From the NCBI GenBank assembly GCA_000388065.2, contig KB932202.1: a stretch of 9,954 nucleotides of DNA. The stretch is one strand, 5' to 3'. Every line of letters starts with the position of its first letter. The first letter of the stretch is position 1. Positions 1 to 9,933 of the stretch are shown here, piece after piece. The notes beneath the pieces were generated by a model that was given only the letters and a program-made list of their open reading frames with translations, did not search any database and had not been told where the DNA came from. The DNA comes from Fonticula alba ATCC 38817. Taxonomy: Eukaryota; Protista; Nucleariida. A program made the position numbers and the translations under genes.

Positions 1-19
1 TGTGTGTGTGTGTGTCAGA

Positions 20-64
<45 letters not shown>
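1..64. repeat. Compound microsatellite (TG)n-(AG)n inside the last visible intron of gene 1
   Basis: (TG)n at 1-15, then AG repeats at 17-64 with one T interruption at 34. Confidence 0.95.
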
Positions 65-66
<2 letters not shown>

Positions 67-149
67 CGAGGAGGAAGGGAAATATGGGGGATAGAGCGGG
101 CGAATGGATCAAAGGCACAAGAAGAGAGAAAAGGGGATGGGAGACCGGA

Positions 150-153
<4 letters not shown>

Positions 154-180
<27 letters not shown>
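154..180. repeat. (AG)n microsatellite directly after the GTGCGT donor, reading (TC)n on the transcript strand
   Basis: Read directly from the sequence. Confidence 0.95.
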
Positions 181-186
181 ACGCAC

Positions 187-1437
187 CTTGAAGTTCTTGA
201 TCGCGGCGATGGCGTGGTGCATCTCCGCACGGATGTCCTTCTGCAGCTTGCGGGCCGAGCGCGACAGCTCGCCCTGGGTGGCCTTCAGAGAGCGGAGGTC
301 CGCGGCCACAGCGCGCACCGACTGGCCGTCGACGGCCGAGACAATCGTCGGGGCGGCCGGGGCGGCCTGGGCGGCCGGGGCGGCCACCACGGCGGCCGTG
401 GCCATGGCCGAGGAGGCCACCGGCCGGGAGACATTCGCGGCAACACCACCGCCAGTCAGGGCACCGAGGAGCTCATCACGGAGCTGCTCAAACCGCTCGG
501 CCAAGGCGGCGCCAGACCCGGCAGCCGGACCGGCCGCCCCGACCCGCACGAAGCACCCCTCGGCCAGGAAGTCCATGTCGTCCAGCTCATAGAAGTCCAC
601 CTCGCCAGCCTCGCGCACGGACACAACCGGCGTCGCAGGGAGCTCGGCATCCGGGAAGCTGGCCCGGAACAGGTCAAGCAGGGCCCCATGCAGGCCGGCC
701 AGGCCGGCCACCGGGCCACACGGCTCAAAGCGCACGCGCTTGCGCCGGTCCCCCAGCTCGATGAAGAGCTTGGCCAGGGCAAAGGACCGGACGGGCTGCT
801 GGTCCTCGACCGCAGCCTGCTCCTTAGAAACATGGACGGGCTTGGAGGGCACCTCGTCCTCATCCTCGGAGACCCCGCGCCGGGGGGACTCCTCGGCGGT
901 GGCCAGCTCGCTGGCCGGCGGGGGGGCCGTCTTGGTGGCGGACTTCGGAGCCTCGCTGGCCTCGGTGGGCTCCAAGTCGGACACCAGAGTGGCCGGGTCC
1001 TGGACCAGCACCGCATCGGAGAAGGACTCCTCAACGGCGGCAACCGGCTCCAGGACACACGTCTCGGTGGAGGAGGTGGGCGGCAGAAGCTCAACGCCAT
1101 CATCCGTCTCGGGGACCGGAGTAGCCTCCTCCACTGGGACCTGGGGGGCAACCTCCACCTCGGCCTCGGCCTCGGCCTCGGATTCGGTATCGGGCTCGGG
1201 CTCGAGCTCGACTTCGGGCTCGGGCTCGGGCTCGGCTTCGGGCTCGGCTTCAGGCTCGGACTCCGGGTCGACAATCTCGGACTTTGTCTCGGCCGGGGTC
1301 GGGGTCACCTCGGGATCGGCCTCCTCGGCGGCCGACTCGCACTCGCTATCGGGCTCGACGAAGGGGATGATGATCTGGTCATCGGGCGTTTGCAGCGCAT
1401 GCAGCACCGAGGACACCAGACACGAGTCCTCCGGGTT
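187..1437 (-). CDS. BUD6: Gene 1 exon 5 of those visible (417 codons): end of FERM-like region, acidic Glu/Pro linker, Bud6/Aip3 (AIP3) domain and coiled coil
   Basis: Acceptor gtgacAG|AAC at 1439-1438; donor AAG|GTGCGT at 186. Translation LFIELGDRRKRVRF...LLDLFRASF...PVVSVREAGEVDFYELDDMDFLAEGCFVRV (from 768 downward) fits the AIP3 N-terminal pattern of fungal Bud6 (LF.xGD..K...L.LF...F...P.I.I.....FYELE...D...G.V), recalled from memory. It is followed by heptad-like VRAVAADLRSLKATQGELSRSARKLQKDIRAEMHHAIAAIKNFK. Third codon positions are strongly G/C. The symbol means family membership (BUD6/AIP3-like), not proven orthology. Confidence 0.85.
1157..1262 (-). repeat. Coding degenerate hexamer repeat encoding (E-P/E-A)n
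   Basis: Plus-strand ctcggc/tcgggc units translate on the minus strand as ESEPEAEPEAEPEPEPEVELEPEPDTESEAEAEAE. Confidence 0.85.
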
Positions 1438-1518
1438 CTGTCACGGACGGAACGGAGAGATGTGGCCATGATTAGAGAAGAGTCGAGCAGGATGCCCGAA
1501 AGACGCGCATGGAGGGGG

Positions 1519-1522
<4 letters not shown>

Positions 1523-1548
<26 letters not shown>
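1523..1548. repeat. (GA)13 intronic microsatellite
   Basis: Read directly; lies inside intron 1438-1585. Confidence 0.95.
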
Positions 1549-1554
<6 letters not shown>

Positions 1555-1585
1555 CATGCAAGGAAAGAGGAAGAGGCATGCGTAC

Positions 1586-1828
1586 GAAGTTGGCCGGCAG
1601 GCAGTAGACAAAGGAAACCCAGGCATTGCAGGCGAGCGACGAGTAGTGGGTCAGGAAGCCGTTGACCACATTGGGCCAGTCGCTGTCAGACTCGCTGGTG
1701 TTGCGGCCCTCGCTAAGGTCGGCAATGGACTTCTTGAAGAAGAGGACGAATGCATCGGAGGCGCCGGTCCCGGTGGCAATGCTGGTGGAGAAGTATTCGA
1801 AGGACTCCAGGATCTCGCCGAGATAACT
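1586..1828 (-). CDS. Gene 1 exon 4 (81 codons): SYLGEILESFEYF...AFVLFFKKSI...THYSSLACNAWVSFVYCLPANF, putative FERM F1 end and F2 start
   Basis: Donor TTC|GTACGC at 1585. The acceptor is the first AG after a CTGAC branch-like motif (about 1885-1881) and a pyrimidine tract: cctaAG|AGT at 1830-1829. Phase 0 at both ends keeps the frame with both neighbouring exons. Confidence 0.8.
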
Positions 1829-1998
1829 CTTAGGCGGCCGTGGGCAGCAAAGGGGGAGGTAGCAGCCGAACGGGCGGTGCGTCAGTGACAGTTTGCAAAT
1901 GCAGCCCCAAGGGGGCGGGGGCGGGGGCGGGGGGGGGGGGAGGCACATGGCCGCCACCAGGGGGTGGCGCCGGCAGCGGGCATAGCCGGGAAAAGTAC

Positions 1999-2103
1999 CT
2001 TGGGCTTGTGGCTAATAAGCCAGTTGTGCAGATCCGTGCTGAGAGTCCGGTGCTCCGTGGCCGAAGAGTCAAGCAGGCGGCGAACCGAGCGCGACAGGGC
2101 AGT
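1999..2103 (-). CDS. Gene 1 exon 3 (35 codons): TALSRSVRRLLDSSATEHRTLSTDLHNWLISHKPK
   Basis: Acceptor ccccctCAG|ACT at 2105-2104 and donor AAG|GTACTT at 1998. The exon is 105 nt, phase 0/0 and stop-free, and lies between two pyrimidine-rich stretches. Confidence 0.75.
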
Positions 2104-2293
2104 CTGAGGGGGCCAGGAATGGGGGGACGCGAAGGGGGACGAAAGGTCCGGTTGTGTTCGAGTCAAGCGAACAATCAGACACCGAGAGAGGGGATGGAGA
2201 GGAGGGGTGAGACCAGGCCCGCGGATGATGGGGTGTTGTGTGGCGGTGCTACAGGGGGGGGGGAGGCGACAGGAGAAGCAAGCCAGCACGCAC

Positions 2294-2611
2294 AGCCTTC
2301 ATGATGGACTTCCAGATGAGAATGAAGTCGGCCGGCGTGGCCAGCAGGGCGAGAGACGGGTCCAGGGCCAGAATCTTGGCCAGCTGAGCGACAGTGGCAG
2401 TGCCGGGAAGCGGCACCAGCAGGCTCAGGCCATCAGTGCCATGCGTGCATGCCCAAAGAGTGCCATGGGGGTGGGGCACGCCGAGGGCCTGAGCGGCGAG
2501 GCGATCGAGAGTGTCCTCCGCGTCCAGGGGAGCCTGCAGCTTGTGGACCTCATCCATCGACACCGCGGTGCCAATCTGCGGCACGCTGCCCAGGACGAAG
2601 TAGGTGATGTG
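2294..2611 (-). CDS. Gene 1 exon 2 (106 codons): HITYFVLGS...GTDGLSLLVPLPGTATVAQLAKILAL...ADFILIWKSIMKA, putative ubiquitin-like FERM F1 lobe
   Basis: Acceptor gtgCAG|CAC at 2613-2612 and donor GCT|GTGCGT at 2293. The exon is 318 nt and phase 0/0, with a globular alternating beta/alpha hydrophobic pattern. Confidence 0.82.
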
Positions 2612-2730
2612 CTGCACGGCGGGAGCAGAAGGGAGAGGACCGAGAGAGGGAGGGGGGCGCCACGGTAGGAGGGAGATCGTCAGGATTGGCACAAGCGTCG
2701 GAAGAGGAAAGAGGGAGGGCGAGGGAGAAA

Positions 2731-2830
2731 GAGAGAGAGAGTGTGTGTGCGTGTGCGTGTGCGTGTGCGTGTGCGTGTGCGTGTGCGTGTGCGTGTGCGT
2801 GTGCGTGTGCGTGTGCGTGTGCGTGTGTGC
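2731..2830. repeat. Intronic compound repeat: (GA)5 followed by (GTGTGC)13 at 2745-2822
   Basis: Perfect hexamer array inside intron 2612-2869. It reads (CACACG)n on the transcript strand and explains the HTHTHT, CVCVCV and ACACAC ORFs. Confidence 0.95.
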
Positions 2831-2869
2831 GGAGGGGGGAGGGGGAAAGCAAAGGGGGCGGGGGCGCAC

Positions 2870-3256
2870 ATCGGCGGGCGGGATAGCCGGCGAGGTGGGC
2901 GCCGAGACGTCGCCCTCATCGCCGGAGCGGACAACCTCGGCCAGCTGCGAGGCGGCCTGCTTCTCGACCGACGCGGCCAGGGCCTCGGTGGCAGCGGTCG
3001 AGGTGTTGGCGCCGCGCCCCTTGCGGCCCTGGCGCTGGGTCGGCGCGGCGGAGAGCTGCGGCGGCTCGGCATGCTGGATGACCACGCTCTCGCGCTGGAA
3101 GGAATCCGGCATCGGGGACATGGGCGTGTCGGGCGAGGAGAAGCCCGGCGTCATGGGCGACGAGGGGGAGGAGGGGTCGGTGCCAGTGGAATTGCCGCCG
3201 GCCGAGGCGGGGCTGCGCGCCGCGCGGTTTCCACGCCGCTTCTGGCGGCGGTTCAT
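2870..3256 (-). CDS. Gene 1 first visible exon (129 codons from ATG 3256; frame stays open to the gap at 3284): disordered, basic then SP/TP-rich
   Basis: Donor GAT|GTGCGC at 2869, phase 0, with GC3-rich codons. The frame also reads PPSPPTKPT upstream of the ATG into the N gap, so the true start is uncertain. Confidence 0.7.
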
Positions 3257-3284
3257 GGTCGGCTTGGTGGGCGGCGAGGGGGGG

Positions 3285-3386
3285 NNNNNNNNNNNNNNNN
3301 NNNNNNNNNNNNNNNNNNNNNNNNNNNNNNNNNNNNNNNNNNNNNNNNNNNNNNNNNNNNNNNNNNNNNNNNNNNNNNNNNNNNNN
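3285..3386. other. Assembly gap (102 N), flanked by G runs
   Basis: N run. Confidence 0.99.
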
Positions 3387-4692
3387 GGGGGGGGGGCAGG
3401 AGCGTTGAGGAGACAACTCGGGAGAAAAGTGGTGAAGCCCCGGCCGAAGGCCCCGGGACCGGGTGGGTCGCCCAGAAATGATTGGCTCTCTGCTCACCTG
3501 AATGGCGGCCCGGCGAGGGCCGCCGGGGGAAAGGCCCAGCAGGCCGAATCTGGCCTTGTCCAGGCGCCGCGCGAAGGACCGAGGCCCGAGACGGGGAACA
3601 TTGGCGGACTAGAGAGCTCGAGGCACGTCCAGCCCTCAACCAGCTGTCCCCGGCTTCCCCCCCCCCCCCCCCCCTCGCATCGGGCTGCTCGAGGGGTTGT
3701 TGGGGTGATCCAACAGAGGGCGACGTCGCGCCCGGGGACAAGTGCGGATCGAGCCGGCCAGCCGGCCGGCCCCGGGCCCGGCCGCCCCCTTCCTCCCCGG
3801 GGGGAGACCCCAGGGGCAGCGGTGTCCTTTTTGAAAAGCGTCCGTCCCGAGCAAACCAGCCCCCTTTCGGCCCTCCCCCGGGGGCGGGCGGGGGCGGGCG
3901 GGGGGGACACGAAGGGGGGCGCCCCTCGGGGAGAGCTCGTGCGCTTGTCTGGCGTCCGGGGAAGGTGCACACCTGGCCGCCAGGCTGAGCGGTGGGCGGC
4001 GAGACAGCCGAGCGACCGGGGGCGGTGGGGAAAGCAAGACCTCCCCTGTGCCAGCAACAGGACGAGAGGTTCCAGCCCCCCCAGCCCGGCGGGGACCGCC
4101 GGGGGGAGGGCGGGGGGGGGGGGGGGGACATCATTAATGAAGCCAGGGGATGCTTCGGCGCGGGGCGGACCGGTGCCTGGCCGCGGCGAGCGCAAGCAAG
4201 CGGCCCGGGGCCAGAGAGCGGAGGCCCACGAAATATGCCAATTGCCAATGTCCCCCAGCCGCGCCGAAAGGCCAGCTGGAATGCCTCGGCAGCCGGCCCG
4301 ACAGGCTCATTCTTCGGGCGCTGGCGAGATGGGGCCCGCTCGGCTGCTCGCCGCCCGCCCCGGCACGTCCCGGCCGCCGCGCCCGGGCCCCTCCTTCATC
4401 GCACGTCGGCCTCCGGTCTTGGCATGCACCGCGCGAAGGATGAAAACCGTGGCTCGCCGCAATGACGAGCCCGCCCCCGGGGGCATGGGGTACTGCGGGC
4501 AGGACCGGGGGACGTGGACACCGGCACGCAACAGTCGCGCCGTGTCAACAGTCCCCTCTCAGGACGAAGGATCCTCCGCCCCCCTCCAACTTGGCCCGCG
4601 GGAGGGTGTGTTTCAGCGCCCCCGGTCCCCGGCAGGCGGGCGTCGCCCAAGCGCGGGCGGAATCTCCGCCGTGACATGCTGCCGGGCCGGCG

Positions 4693-4713
4693 TGCACGAA
4701 GACCGCCTCCCTC
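4693..4713 (+). repeat. 21-nt word TGCACGAAGACCGCCTCCCTC; exact inverted copy at 8989-9009
   Basis: Plus 8989-9009 reads GAGGGAGGCGGTCTTCGTGCA, the exact reverse complement. Confidence 0.9.
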
Positions 4714-5213
4714 CCAGACCGGCCAGCGGAGGGGAGCCGGGCGAGGGGGGGCGGGGGGGGCGGGGAACAACTGGAAACCACGCCCGCCGGACCTCGCCCC
4801 GGGCCCCCGTCCGTCGTCGTCCGAAGGGCAGTGCCACTCTGCGGGCTCATTTTCCGGGGACATTCCCCCGGGGCCAGGGCGGCACATACTTCCTGTCTCC
4901 GCCGCCCTCCTGCGGCCCGCTCCCTGGCCCCCAGAGTCCCGGCCCCCCGGTGTCGCCGGGTGCCCCCCAGCGCCCGGTGCTCCTGGGAGCTCCGAACAGG
5001 ACCGTCCAGAACACACACCACCCTGAGCGCTTTTGCCCCCCCCCCCCCCCCCCCCCCCTGCACTCCAGTCACCGGATCCCCCGAAGAAGGGCAACCTGCC
5101 ACAAAGGAGGGCCAATCAGCGGGCAAGGTCCATTGTTCAGGCTGATCCGGAGGCCGAGGCGTCCTGCGCCGCGCCCTCGCCGGGGGGGGCCTTGCGTTTC
5201 TTGTCCGGGAGAA

Positions 5214-5999
5214 NNNNNNNNNNNNNNNNNNNNNNNNNNNNNNNNNNNNNNNNNNNNNNNNNNNNNNNNNNNNNNNNNNNNNNNNNNNNNNNNNNNNNNN
5301 NNNNNNNNNNNNNNNNNNNNNNNNNNNNNNNNNNNNNNNNNNNNNNNNNNNNNNNNNNNNNNNNNNNNNNNNNNNNNNNNNNNNNNNNNNNNNNNNNNNN
5401 NNNNNNNNNNNNNNNNNNNNNNNNNNNNNNNNNNNNNNNNNNNNNNNNNNNNNNNNNNNNNNNNNNNNNNNNNNNNNNNNNNNNNNNNNNNNNNNNNNNN
5501 NNNNNNNNNNNNNNNNNNNNNNNNNNNNNNNNNNNNNNNNNNNNNNNNNNNNNNNNNNNNNNNNNNNNNNNNNNNNNNNNNNNNNNNNNNNNNNNNNNNN
5601 NNNNNNNNNNNNNNNNNNNNNNNNNNNNNNNNNNNNNNNNNNNNNNNNNNNNNNNNNNNNNNNNNNNNNNNNNNNNNNNNNNNNNNNNNNNNNNNNNNNN
5701 NNNNNNNNNNNNNNNNNNNNNNNNNNNNNNNNNNNNNNNNNNNNNNNNNNNNNNNNNNNNNNNNNNNNNNNNNNNNNNNNNNNNNNNNNNNNNNNNNNNN
5801 NNNNNNNNNNNNNNNNNNNNNNNNNNNNNNNNNNNNNNNNNNNNNNNNNNNNNNNNNNNNNNNNNNNNNNNNNNNNNNNNNNNNNNNNNNNNNNNNNNNN
5901 NNNNNNNNNNNNNNNNNNNNNNNNNNNNNNNNNNNNNNNNNNNNNNNNNNNNNNNNNNNNNNNNNNNNNNNNNNNNNNNNNNNNNNNNNNNNNNNNNNN
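5214..5999. other. Assembly gap (786 N)
   Basis: N run. Confidence 0.99.
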
Positions 6000-6465: not shown

Positions 6466-7260
6466 TCAGGGCGCCGCAACGGCAACGACCGTGGCCACGG
6501 CTCCAGACGAGACCCAAGAAATCAGCAGGGCCGTGGTGCCGAGCAGCGCACTCAGCACCAGGGCCGAAGCAAAGGGGCTGGCGGTGGCGGCCACCGGCGG
6601 GGGGCCACCACTAGCACCATGCCGTCCCGTGCCGGGTGCGGCCGCCGACGCGCGTGCCAGCGAGGACATGGATTCCGAACGAGTGAGGATGCCAGTGCCA
6701 TTAAGGCGGTGCCCGCCGCCGCCAGGGGTGGAGGCCAACTGGCCGCCTCCTCCTCCGCCTGCCGGATGCAAACCTCGGTGGTGGTGGTGCTGTGTGGACC
6801 AGTGGTGCACACCGGGCCCCGGGGCGCCGGCCACATCCAAACGGTTCATGGCCCGGCCACGCAGGAGGGGCGAGGGCTGGGGCGACACGCGGCCATCATG
6901 CGCCCCGCTGAGGAAGCCCCCACTGCGCAGGAACATCGACAGGAGCGGCACCTGTAGCAAAAGCCACTCCACCAATAGCCAGACCGACGCGGCAGCCGGG
7001 TCGCCGGCCGTGGTCGACATGCCCCGAGGCACGCCAGCCAGCGAATCGACGCTGCCACTGCGCGAGAGACCGGGCCGCGGGTCGGCGGGACCCGGCGCGG
7101 CCGACGTCGAGTCCGCCGCGCCAAACACCGACGGCAGCAGGTACCCGGCCACGGACCAGGCCCCGGAGGCAACGCTCTTGAGCAGGGACCCGACGCCCCA
7201 GCCACCGGAGGCCACAGGCGTCTCGGGGACCGGCGCAGGAGCGGGAACAATGACGGCGGC
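6466..7260 (-). CDS. Gene 2 terminal exon (264 aa + TGA): uncharacterised, low-complexity, with an amphipathic segment, an internal hydrophobic segment and a hydrophobic C-terminal tail
   Basis: Acceptor gagaCAG|GCC at 7262-7261 (phase 0) and TGA at 6468-6466. Codons are GC3-rich, and pyrimidine-rich UTR-like sequence follows on the minus strand. Confidence 0.7.
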   Translation of the reverse strand, partial: AAVIVPAPAPVPETPVASGGWGVGSLLKSVASGAWSVAGYLLPSVFGAADSTSAAPGPADPRPGLSRSGSVDSLAGVPRGMSTTAGDPAAASVWLLVEWLLLQVPLLSMFLRSGGFLSGAHDGRVSPQPSPLLRGRAMNRLDVAGAPGPGVHHWSTQHHHHRGLHPAGGGGGGQLASTPGGGGHRLNGTGILTRSESMSSLARASAAAPGTGRHGASGGPPPVAATASPFASALVLSALLGTTALLISWVSSGAVATVVAVAAP

Positions 7261-7320
7261 CTGTCTCGCGGACCGCGACCGCGATCGAAGAGAGGGAGGG
7301 AGGGGGGGAGAGAGCCGGAC

Positions 7321-7362
7321 GTAGGAGGTCAGTTTGAGGGGGCCTATCAGGAGGATGCCCTC
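7321..7362 (-). CDS. Gene 2 micro-exon (14 codons): EGILLIGPLKLTSY
   Basis: Acceptor tttctcCAG|GAG at 7364-7363 and putative donor TAC|GTCCGG at 7320, followed by a pyrimidine tract. Phase 0/0. The 60-nt downstream intron is in frame and stop-free, so it could instead be coding. Confidence 0.6.
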
Positions 7363-7440
7363 CTGGAGAAAGAAGGCCACCACAGCAGACCGAGCCGGAG
7401 GGGGCCAGGGATGGGGGAGGAGGGGGAGGGGGGGAGAGCA

Positions 7441-7482
7441 TGTGTATGTGTGTGTGAGAGTGTGTGTGTGTGTGTGTGTGTG
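7441..7482. repeat. Interrupted (TG)n intronic microsatellite
   Basis: Read directly; lies inside intron 7363-7491. Confidence 0.95.
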
Positions 7483-7491
7483 AAAACGCAC

Positions 7492-8785
7492 GGTGACGGG
7501 CTCCTTGTTGATGGCCACCGCCGGGGCCAGCCGCTGCCCAGGAGGCGGGAGCTTGAAGTGCTCCAGAGCATGGATCGGCCGGTCCTGGTTGCGGGAGTCC
7601 TCGCCGCCGGTGAGGTCGCCAATCGGACCGCCCGCGACGCCCCGGGCGGTCGAGGAGGACGAAGAGCCGGAGGAGGAATCCAGCTCGGCGGTCAGCCGGC
7701 GCGCGGCCTCCATGGTCTTCGGCACCAGGCGCTGAAGGGTCTTCTTGGCATTGAGCAATGTGCCGCCGGTGGTACCGGCACCGGACATGCCACGGGCCGC
7801 GGCGGATGACGCCGGCGCCGGGTACGGCTGGCTCAAGCGCGCCGGGCTGCTGCTCACGCCGCGTACCCCGGAGAGGCTGAGCTTGCCAACCGGCCGGGGG
7901 GTGGCCGGGGCAGCGGCCGGAGCGGCCACCACCGGCGCCGGCGGAGCCAGATGCTCCTGGGTCACCTCCACCAGCAGGGGAATCCACCACTTGTAGAAGA
8001 ACTGATAGGCGCTGATGGCGTGCGGCCGGATGGTGGACCAGAGGAAGAAGCTGTGATAATTGTCCACCTGCGCGCGGACCGACACGGACACCCGGCCGGC
8101 ACGCGGGACGGCCACCGGGGCGGGCTTCTTGGCCGGGGGGGCCACGCGCGCCGGCGTGTGGGTGCCGGTCCGTGCTGGCGAGGCCGCCAAGTGGAAGAGC
8201 CCCGGGAAAACCGGGCGCGGGACCTCGGAAAGGCCCTCGGCATGGTCACGCCCCGGGTGCTTGCGGAAGGACAGCTGCAGCAGGCTGGTGGGGGCCGCCG
8301 AGTCGAGCGCCGGGGCCGGAGCCAGGGCCAAAGAGCCGGCACTGGCCGTCGGAGTAGCCAGACCGGTCGGGGACTCCGGCTCGCTGAGGCCATCGCTCTC
8401 GGACGAGTGGTGATGGTCGGCCCCCAGGAGCCGGGGCCCGGCCGCGTGACGGAAGAGATGGTCCACCGGCGAGTCGGCCTGGAGGGGATAATCGTCGATG
8501 GTCGAGGCAAGAGGGCCCCCCCGAGCCAATGGTGCATGCCGGGGAGTCGACGTGCCGGAGGGGCTCGGGGAGGGGACCCCACCATCGTCCGAGTCGGACT
8601 CGGCGTCGGCGTCGGCGTCGGCATTGGCGGTGGCCGCATCGGCGAGCTGCAAGTCCTGCTCGGACATCGAGTCGACCACCGTGGCCGACTCGTCGAAGAT
8701 CGGCTTAATGGTAACCAGGATGTTGGCCTCGTAGTCCGCGTGGCAGGGGCCATTTTGGGGCTTGTTTTTGATCCAGAGGCGGAAG
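7492..8785 (-). CDS. Gene 2 large internal exon (about 431 codons): uncharacterised protein with short ordered blocks in disordered Ala/Pro/Ser sequence
   Basis: Acceptor cctttgcttgtCAG|C at 8787-8786 (phase 2) and donor ACC|GTGCGT at 7491 (phase 0). Open frame with GC3-rich codons. Ordered blocks include FRLWIKNKPQNGPCHADYEANILVTIKPIFDE, VSVSVRAQVDNYHSFFLWSTIRPHAISAYQFFYKWWIPLLVEV, LLNAKKTLQRLVPKTME and IHALEHFKLPPPGQRL. No family recognised. Confidence 0.8.
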
Positions 8786-8825
8786 CTGACAAGCAAAGGC
8801 ACGCGGCAGGGAGGGGGGGAGGGGG

Positions 8826-8835
8826 NNNNNNNNNN
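8826..8835. other. Assembly gap (10 N) inside the intron upstream of gene 2 exon 8785-7492
   Basis: N run after a G-rich tract. Confidence 0.99.
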
Positions 8836-8988
8836 GACCGTGGTGCCAGTGCGCCCGTACCCCGGCGTGCCGTGGCGCGTTCCCCCCCCCCCCCCCCCCC
8901 GACAGGTCACCATCCAGCAGGCCCGTGTCGGGACCCCCCCCCCCTCGCTCCCTGTGAATGTTGCTCGGCACCCTCGCCCCCGATCCGA

Positions 8989-9009
8989 GAGGGAGGCGGT
9001 CTTCGTGCA
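8989..9009 (-). repeat. Inverted copy of the 21-nt word at 4693-4713
   Basis: Exact 21/21 match, checked base by base. Confidence 0.9.
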
Positions 9010-9074
9010 AGTCAGGCTCGGACCAATGGACCGTCGTACCGCCCCTGCACACACTCGAATGAGAACACAGACAT

Positions 9075-9108
9075 GCGTGCACGCACACGCACACACACAA
9101 GGACACTT

Positions 9109-9142
<34 letters not shown>

Positions 9143-9207
9143 GCACACTCGCACACACACTCGCACACACACTCGCACACACACTCGCACACACACTCGC
9201 ACACACA
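9075..9207. repeat. (CA)n microsatellite grading into a 12-nt unit TCGCACACACAC, about 5 copies at 9149-9207
   Basis: Units start at 9149, 9161, 9173, 9185 and 9197, with a shorter 8-nt unit at 9141. Confidence 0.92.
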
Positions 9208-9933
9208 TGCCAATGATGTGTTGTCCTCGGGCCCCGGGGATCGTCGGATGATAGCCCCTCGAACCCTTGATTGATCACCTCTGTCGCCATACCCCGCCGA
9301 TCTCCATGGAGGAGAAGCCCCCGTCGGAGGCTCCCGGGGCCGGGGGGTACCCCTGGCGGCCGGTGTGCACGAGGGTGGCCGAATCGCCGCCGTGATGGAT
9401 CGAGCGAGGCGCCGGCGTCGTCAGGCCCGCCGGAGGAGCCGCGGACACGCAACAGCGCAGACATCAGGGCGCCCCGGAGGGGCTGGGAGCGAGCGAAAAC
9501 CCGGGGACACCCTGCGATCGCGCCCCCTCCCTTGTCACACGACCCCCTCCTACCCCGGAGCGCCGATGGGCGGACACTCGTAGCATGCCCGCCGAGCCAG
9601 CCGCCGGAGATGGGTCGGCCCGCGGGGACGCATTCCAGAGGGGAAAAACCGGCCTCCCTCGCCCCGCTCCCGGGGTTCCCCGCTGCCTGCTCAGGGGAGA
9701 GCTGCTTGCGTGGGGGGGGGGGGGGGGGACGGCCGGGGGGGAGCTGGACCCGCGAGGTTAGAGATGACCCGGCCACGGTCAACTATGAGCAAGCATGCTC
9801 ACCCCCGGAGGGCGCCGCCCGCGCTGCGTGCGGGTTCGCCCCCCGGCCCCGAGACGCGCCCAAAAGCCCCCGCCCCCTCCCGCCGCCACCCAGGCTCGCC
9901 GCCACTGTCCGACCCGGAGGCCGGCCCCCCCCG

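Follow-up and report, generated by a model that had tools for sequence, protein, structure and literature searches.

A spliced and expressed Fonticula alba gene with an orphan front module and a probable AIP3/Bud6-type tail

Bud6/Aip3 of Saccharomyces cerevisiae belongs to the family PF03915, which also includes SRCIN1/p140Cap and KIAA1217/SKT. Bud6 is organized in two parts: its N-terminal half localises the protein and its C-terminal half activates formin, with binding of both the formin DAD and G-actin assigned to residues 489-788 (PMC3204064). In the literature, no paper connecting Bud6/AIP3 with FERM or with nucleariids was found. Here, we describe a gene of the nucleariid Fonticula alba ATCC 38817, located on the minus strand of a 9,954-nucleotide stretch of contig KB932202.1 (assembly GCA_000388065.2), hereafter the window. 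Like Bud6 and its relatives, the encoded protein has in its C-terminal half what is probably an AIP3-type block and, after it, a long helix; the two-part logic is also similar, the front half being variable and the rear half conserved. It differs from Bud6 in that its front half comprises an orphan module, apparently folded, together with an acidic spacer of 190 residues. With a probability of about 0.55, we read this locus as one expressed gene whose product is composed of a disordered basic tail, a lineage-specific folded module, an acidic spacer and the probable start of an AIP3/Bud6-type region.

When the exons 3256-2870, 2611-2294, 2103-1999, 1828-1586 and 1437-187 are joined, they form a single uninterrupted reading frame of 768 codons, and the length of each exon (387, 318, 105, 243 and 1251 nt, respectively) is divisible by three, so that all of them are phase-0. 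Introns 1 to 4 start with GT(G/A)C and end with AG. More specifically, the donors of introns 1 to 5 are GTGCGC, GTGCGT, GTACTT, GTACGC and GTGCGT, and the acceptors of introns 1 to 4 are CAG, CAG, AAG and CAG. All peptides quoted in the initial annotation are present in this frame: TLWACTHG begins at 2461, and ADFILIWKS, NWLISHKPK/SYLGEILESFE (which spans intron 3, at the slash), FVLFFKKSI, THYSSLACNAWVSFVYCLP and PEDSCLVSSVLHALQ follow downstream in that order. The five-exon, phase-0 gene model that had been proposed there is therefore confirmed, with GT..AG introns. The gene is truncated by the window edge, since past the donor at 187 only intron sequence made of CT/AG microsatellites is found (start of intron 5, 1-186) and the remaining gene lies beyond.

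Transcript data came from four public runs of 2012 (X1 to X4), representing two samples of one study, whose contigs were aligned to positions 1-3280. The RNA status of these runs is only guessed in their records; since GT..AG introns are precisely removed from the contigs, these derive from spliced transcripts. The four runs contain 0.69-0.70 of the sampled words from 187-3256, a value near the exon share (0.75). Their contigs carry the joints 2870/2611, 2294/2103, 1999/1828 and 1586/1437 (the last given as 1435 plus the letters CT) with no mismatches, the first joint being present in all four runs, and the intron depth in the contigs is zero. One contig of 3563 nt, from record 1 of X1, leads from 3280 to 190 through all five exons and continues for 1216 nt beyond; at the other end, transcript contig sequence extends 22 nt upstream of position 3280. 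Since one contig and one continuous frame span all exons, the front module and the tail share one mRNA. The single transcript claimed earlier is thereby borne out, and the possibility that the front module and the AIP3-like exon belong to different mRNAs fails. Collectively, these data show that the gene, which belongs to a GC-rich amoeba-like eukaryote, is real, spliced and expressed; it has at least six exons and encodes a protein of at most about 1170 residues.

The rear part of the visible protein is encoded by exon 5. From aa 566 onwards, it consists of a hydrophobic block (aa 566-650, positions 541-795), an Ala/Gly-rich spacer (aa 651-719, 334-540) and a long helix (aa about 720-768, 187-333) that probably starts a coiled coil and runs to the end of the exon at its GTGCGT donor. 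In our reading, the hydrophobic block, whose predicted fold is of low confidence, forms the N-terminal part of an AIP3/Bud6-type region, and it is likely that the tail as a whole represents the start of such a region. Indeed, in a language-model search with 187-765, the first neighbour was the cluster 'Actin interacting protein 3 domain-containing protein', in which 100% of the members carry PF03915. The match has a score of 0.78, with 148 of 256 features shared, a recognition value of 2402 (2300 is the level reached by most known families) and concordance of 6 of the 10 best family matches. This cluster coincides with the motif reading of the initial annotation, made independently, which had pointed to the same rare family; for AIP3 membership, this agreement constitutes a lead. 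In an AlphaFold2 model computed without an alignment, the end of exon 5 forms a helix at model residues 147-191 with a predicted local distance difference test (pLDDT) of 84-93, the spacer stays below 50, and the whole AIP3-like piece reaches a pLDDT of 50 and was not used in the fold search. Furthermore, the mRNA past the window edge, about 1.2 kb, fits the remainder of an AIP3 region of ~400 residues.

Several results weigh against the AIP3 assignment and speak for an alternative in which the C-terminal part is a lineage-specific coiled-coil scaffold that resembles AIP3 by chance. The language-model score of just 0.78 falls below 0.9, under which the tool rates its matches as leads only. No PF03915 row was returned by Pfam at E<=10 for exon 5 and three sub-pieces. 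A word-index protein search with the whole exon 5, residues 222-417 and residues 214-305 (the last at E<=10) found no match, its length filter leaving out proteins of about 1100 aa, and none was found by a metagenome scan with the AIP3-like piece. In comparison with Bud6, the visible part has no profile match and the formin- and actin-binding segments would fall outside the window, which includes no more than the initial third to half of an AIP3 domain. On the other hand, the motif reading and the language-model cluster are two independent leads towards one rare family, and the length of the remaining mRNA is consistent with an AIP3 region. A chance resemblance is, in our estimation, unlikely, and the start of an AIP3/Bud6-type region is the reading that we prefer. 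The earlier claim of an AIP3 domain in exon 5 agrees with the nearest language-model cluster, as a probable AIP3-type start, but has no Pfam match. A sequence search of the Protein Data Bank (PDB) with the AIP3-like piece gave nothing relevant. Separately, the sub-threshold Pfam rows CcmH and Prim-Pol, obtained among the five exon pieces and three sub-pieces, were rejected as chance.

The front module corresponds to aa 130-378, a hydrophobic and aromatic-rich segment with low-complexity sequence on both sides, which is probably folded. Its first part is encoded by exon 2 (aa 130-235, 2294-2611), and exon 3 (aa 236-270, 1999-2103) probably contributes a helical insert inside the module. Exon 4 (aa 271-351, 1586-1828) provides an aromatic-rich part with the strand-like FVLFFKKS and a Trp/Tyr-rich, helix-like stretch, and the module would end within the first 27 codons of exon 5 (aa 352-378, 1357-1437) with the PEDSCLVSSVLHALQ stretch and then QIIIPFV. 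As had been described earlier, an acidic linker trails this folded-looking block: it is Pro/Glu-rich, of low complexity, and occupies aa 379-565 (796-1356). A period-6/12 DNA repeat lies within the linker at 1159-1263.

Relatives of the front module were searched for exon by exon, with contiguous pieces. For each exon piece, the FERM_N, FERM_M, RA and ubiquitin families were all without a match in Pfam at E<=10. Exons 2 and 4 gave zero matches among PDB chains (phmmer, E<=10), though many FERM structures have been solved, and neither exon 4 nor exon 2 obtained a usable neighbour in the language-model search (recognition 1295 and 1824, respectively, both below 2300). Exon 2 had no credible relative in a complete HMMER pass over 1.84 billion cluster representatives, nor did exon 4 in a metagenome scan. 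Three matches of exon 2 in the HMMER pass (E 3e-5 to 8e-4) are considered spurious: the two that were read are tandem-repeat proteins aligned via repeated short stretches, and the third is of the same mode, with seven short stretches. An exact look-up of two long open reading frames (ORFs) of the window returned no record. An internal duplication relating the front module to the AIP3-like block was also considered and rejected, the local score of 24 being lower than the shuffle mean of 26.7. Judging from its sequence, the front module is apparently a lineage-specific alpha/beta module without recognisable relatives at the sequence level. It counts against this orphan status that the Fonticula alba protein itself is missing from both protein libraries searched, and the lack of relatives is for this reason weaker evidence than the sizes of the libraries imply.

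According to the initial annotation, the front module follows the FERM F1/F2 consensus in order, comprising an F1 lobe and the first F2 helices without F3. A true FERM relative at aa about 179-367 would anchor the AIP3 part to a membrane-protein tail or to the cortex. In an ungapped comparison, 7 of the 21 fixed positions of the proposed F1 pattern match, a value equalled by 58 of 500 shuffles, and 3 of the 9 fixed positions of the F2 pattern, equalled by 474 of 500. Since these scores are not above chance, the resemblance to the FERM consensus needs free gapping, and the claim that the text follows it does not hold. The FERM call itself is not supported either, as no Pfam, PDB-sequence or language-model match was obtained and exon 2 has no relatives. 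Compared with known FERM domains, such as those of KRIT1, myosin VII (MyTH4-FERM) and talin, the module may share a beta-grasp start, and F1 lobes are found among its weak structural neighbours; it differs by the lack of sequence-profile support, of room for a full F2 and of F3. Only ~70 residues separate the FFKKS strand from the acidic linker, which leaves insufficient room for an F2 lobe of about 100 residues. The Pro/Glu-rich low-complexity linker then follows the module directly, with no PH/PTB-like F3 lobe. The absence of F3 had also been noted in the initial annotation. A genuine FERM relative is very improbable, and the name FERM is unproven and unwarranted on present evidence.

Another explanation is that the front module is a beta-grasp of the RA or ubiquitin-like (UBL) type with a helical extension, which would bind a Ras/Rap-type GTPase or another partner and couple small-GTPase signals to a Bud6-like factor. 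In the exon 2 model, elements predicted with low confidence follow the order strand (181-186), strand (192-197), helix (203-217), strand (226-229). They would represent the first four elements of a beta-beta-alpha-beta-beta-(alpha)-beta beta-grasp, modelled from one exon. Ubiquitin-like domains make up roughly half of the 40 highest-ranking structural neighbours, all of them weak; those named include SAP18, the RA domains of Grb10 and AF-6/afadin, the ASPP2 N-terminus, 2cs4, PLC-epsilon RA1, the UBL domains of USP7/USP11 and PB1. The likeness to RA/ubiquitin-like folds consists of this order of elements and of weak structural neighbours, and the differences are the missing RA or ubiquitin Pfam match, the low confidence of the model, and a long helical insert and extension. 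Based on the model, the start of the front module may be a ubiquitin-like beta-grasp, but this low-confidence lead leaves FERM F1, RA, UBL and PB1 undistinguished. An RA- or UBL-type domain is possible, if on the unlikely side. It is quite unlikely that the module is a cut-down beta-grasp of the FERM-F1/RA type with a private helical extension, docking either on the tail of a membrane protein or on a small GTPase. If true, the latter reading would mean that this nucleariid has a Bud6-type formin activator tethered directly to the membrane or to a GTPase, an architecture undescribed for fungal Bud6 and for animal SRCIN1/KIAA1217. The reading that we retain is that of an apparently lineage-specific folded module.

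The function of this module is speculative. By analogy with Bud6, the front module (aa 130-378) would act as a targeting or regulatory part, and the flexible acidic spacer (aa 379-565) would let it act at a distance. The C-terminal part encoded outside the window would, in turn, be a formin nucleation-promoting factor. Since the relevant parts of AIP3 lie outside the window, the role of formin co-activator goes beyond the visible sequence.

The remaining elements of the gene are exon 1 and the introns. Exon 1 (aa 1-129, 2870-3256; ATG at 3256-3254) encodes a basic, Ser/Pro-rich tail, which is probably disordered, and spliced contig sequence covers 3280-2870. A 100-N assembly gap is present at 3286-3386; since this N run begins just 30 nt ahead of the ATG, the promoter and the 5' untranslated region are missing from the assembly. 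Intron 1 (258 nt, 2612-2869), which contains a (GTGCGT)n microsatellite, keeps the frame and has no stop codon. A naive ORF of 335 aa (2249-3256) therefore fuses it with exons 1 and 2, and the His/Thr repeat of this false ORF is encoded by the microsatellite. Introns 2 (190 nt, 2104-2293) and 3 (170 nt, 1829-1998) separate exons 2, 3 and 4, and intron 4 (148 nt, 1438-1585) carries an (AG/CT)n run. Introns 1 to 4 each contain one CTRAY site (CTGAC, CTGAT, CTGAC and CTAAT, respectively), located 34-71 nt 5' of the acceptor. They are nearly devoid of AG besides that of the acceptor, with AG-free tails of 143-255 nt.

Upstream of this gene, the region 3400-5100 has a G+C content of 73-75% and overlapping long ORFs on both strands, which are likely compositional artefacts. 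A second N run, also an assembly gap, is located at about 5190-5990. Further on, an open frame of 915 codons extends over 6466-9213 of the minus strand through CA/TG microsatellites; it probably belongs to a second multi-exon gene, and no Pfam family matches it at E<=0.1.

On present evidence, the locus is an ordinary gene that is expressed and encodes an orphan domain, and a FERM-AIP3 fusion is not established. Should the tail be a genuine AIP3 region, the gene would encode a factor of the Bud6 type in the sister lineage of fungi, with a folded, apparently lineage-specific front module in place of the front half of yeast Bud6, which is poorly conserved. Such a protein could reveal how a formin co-activator was targeted before the fungal polarisome.
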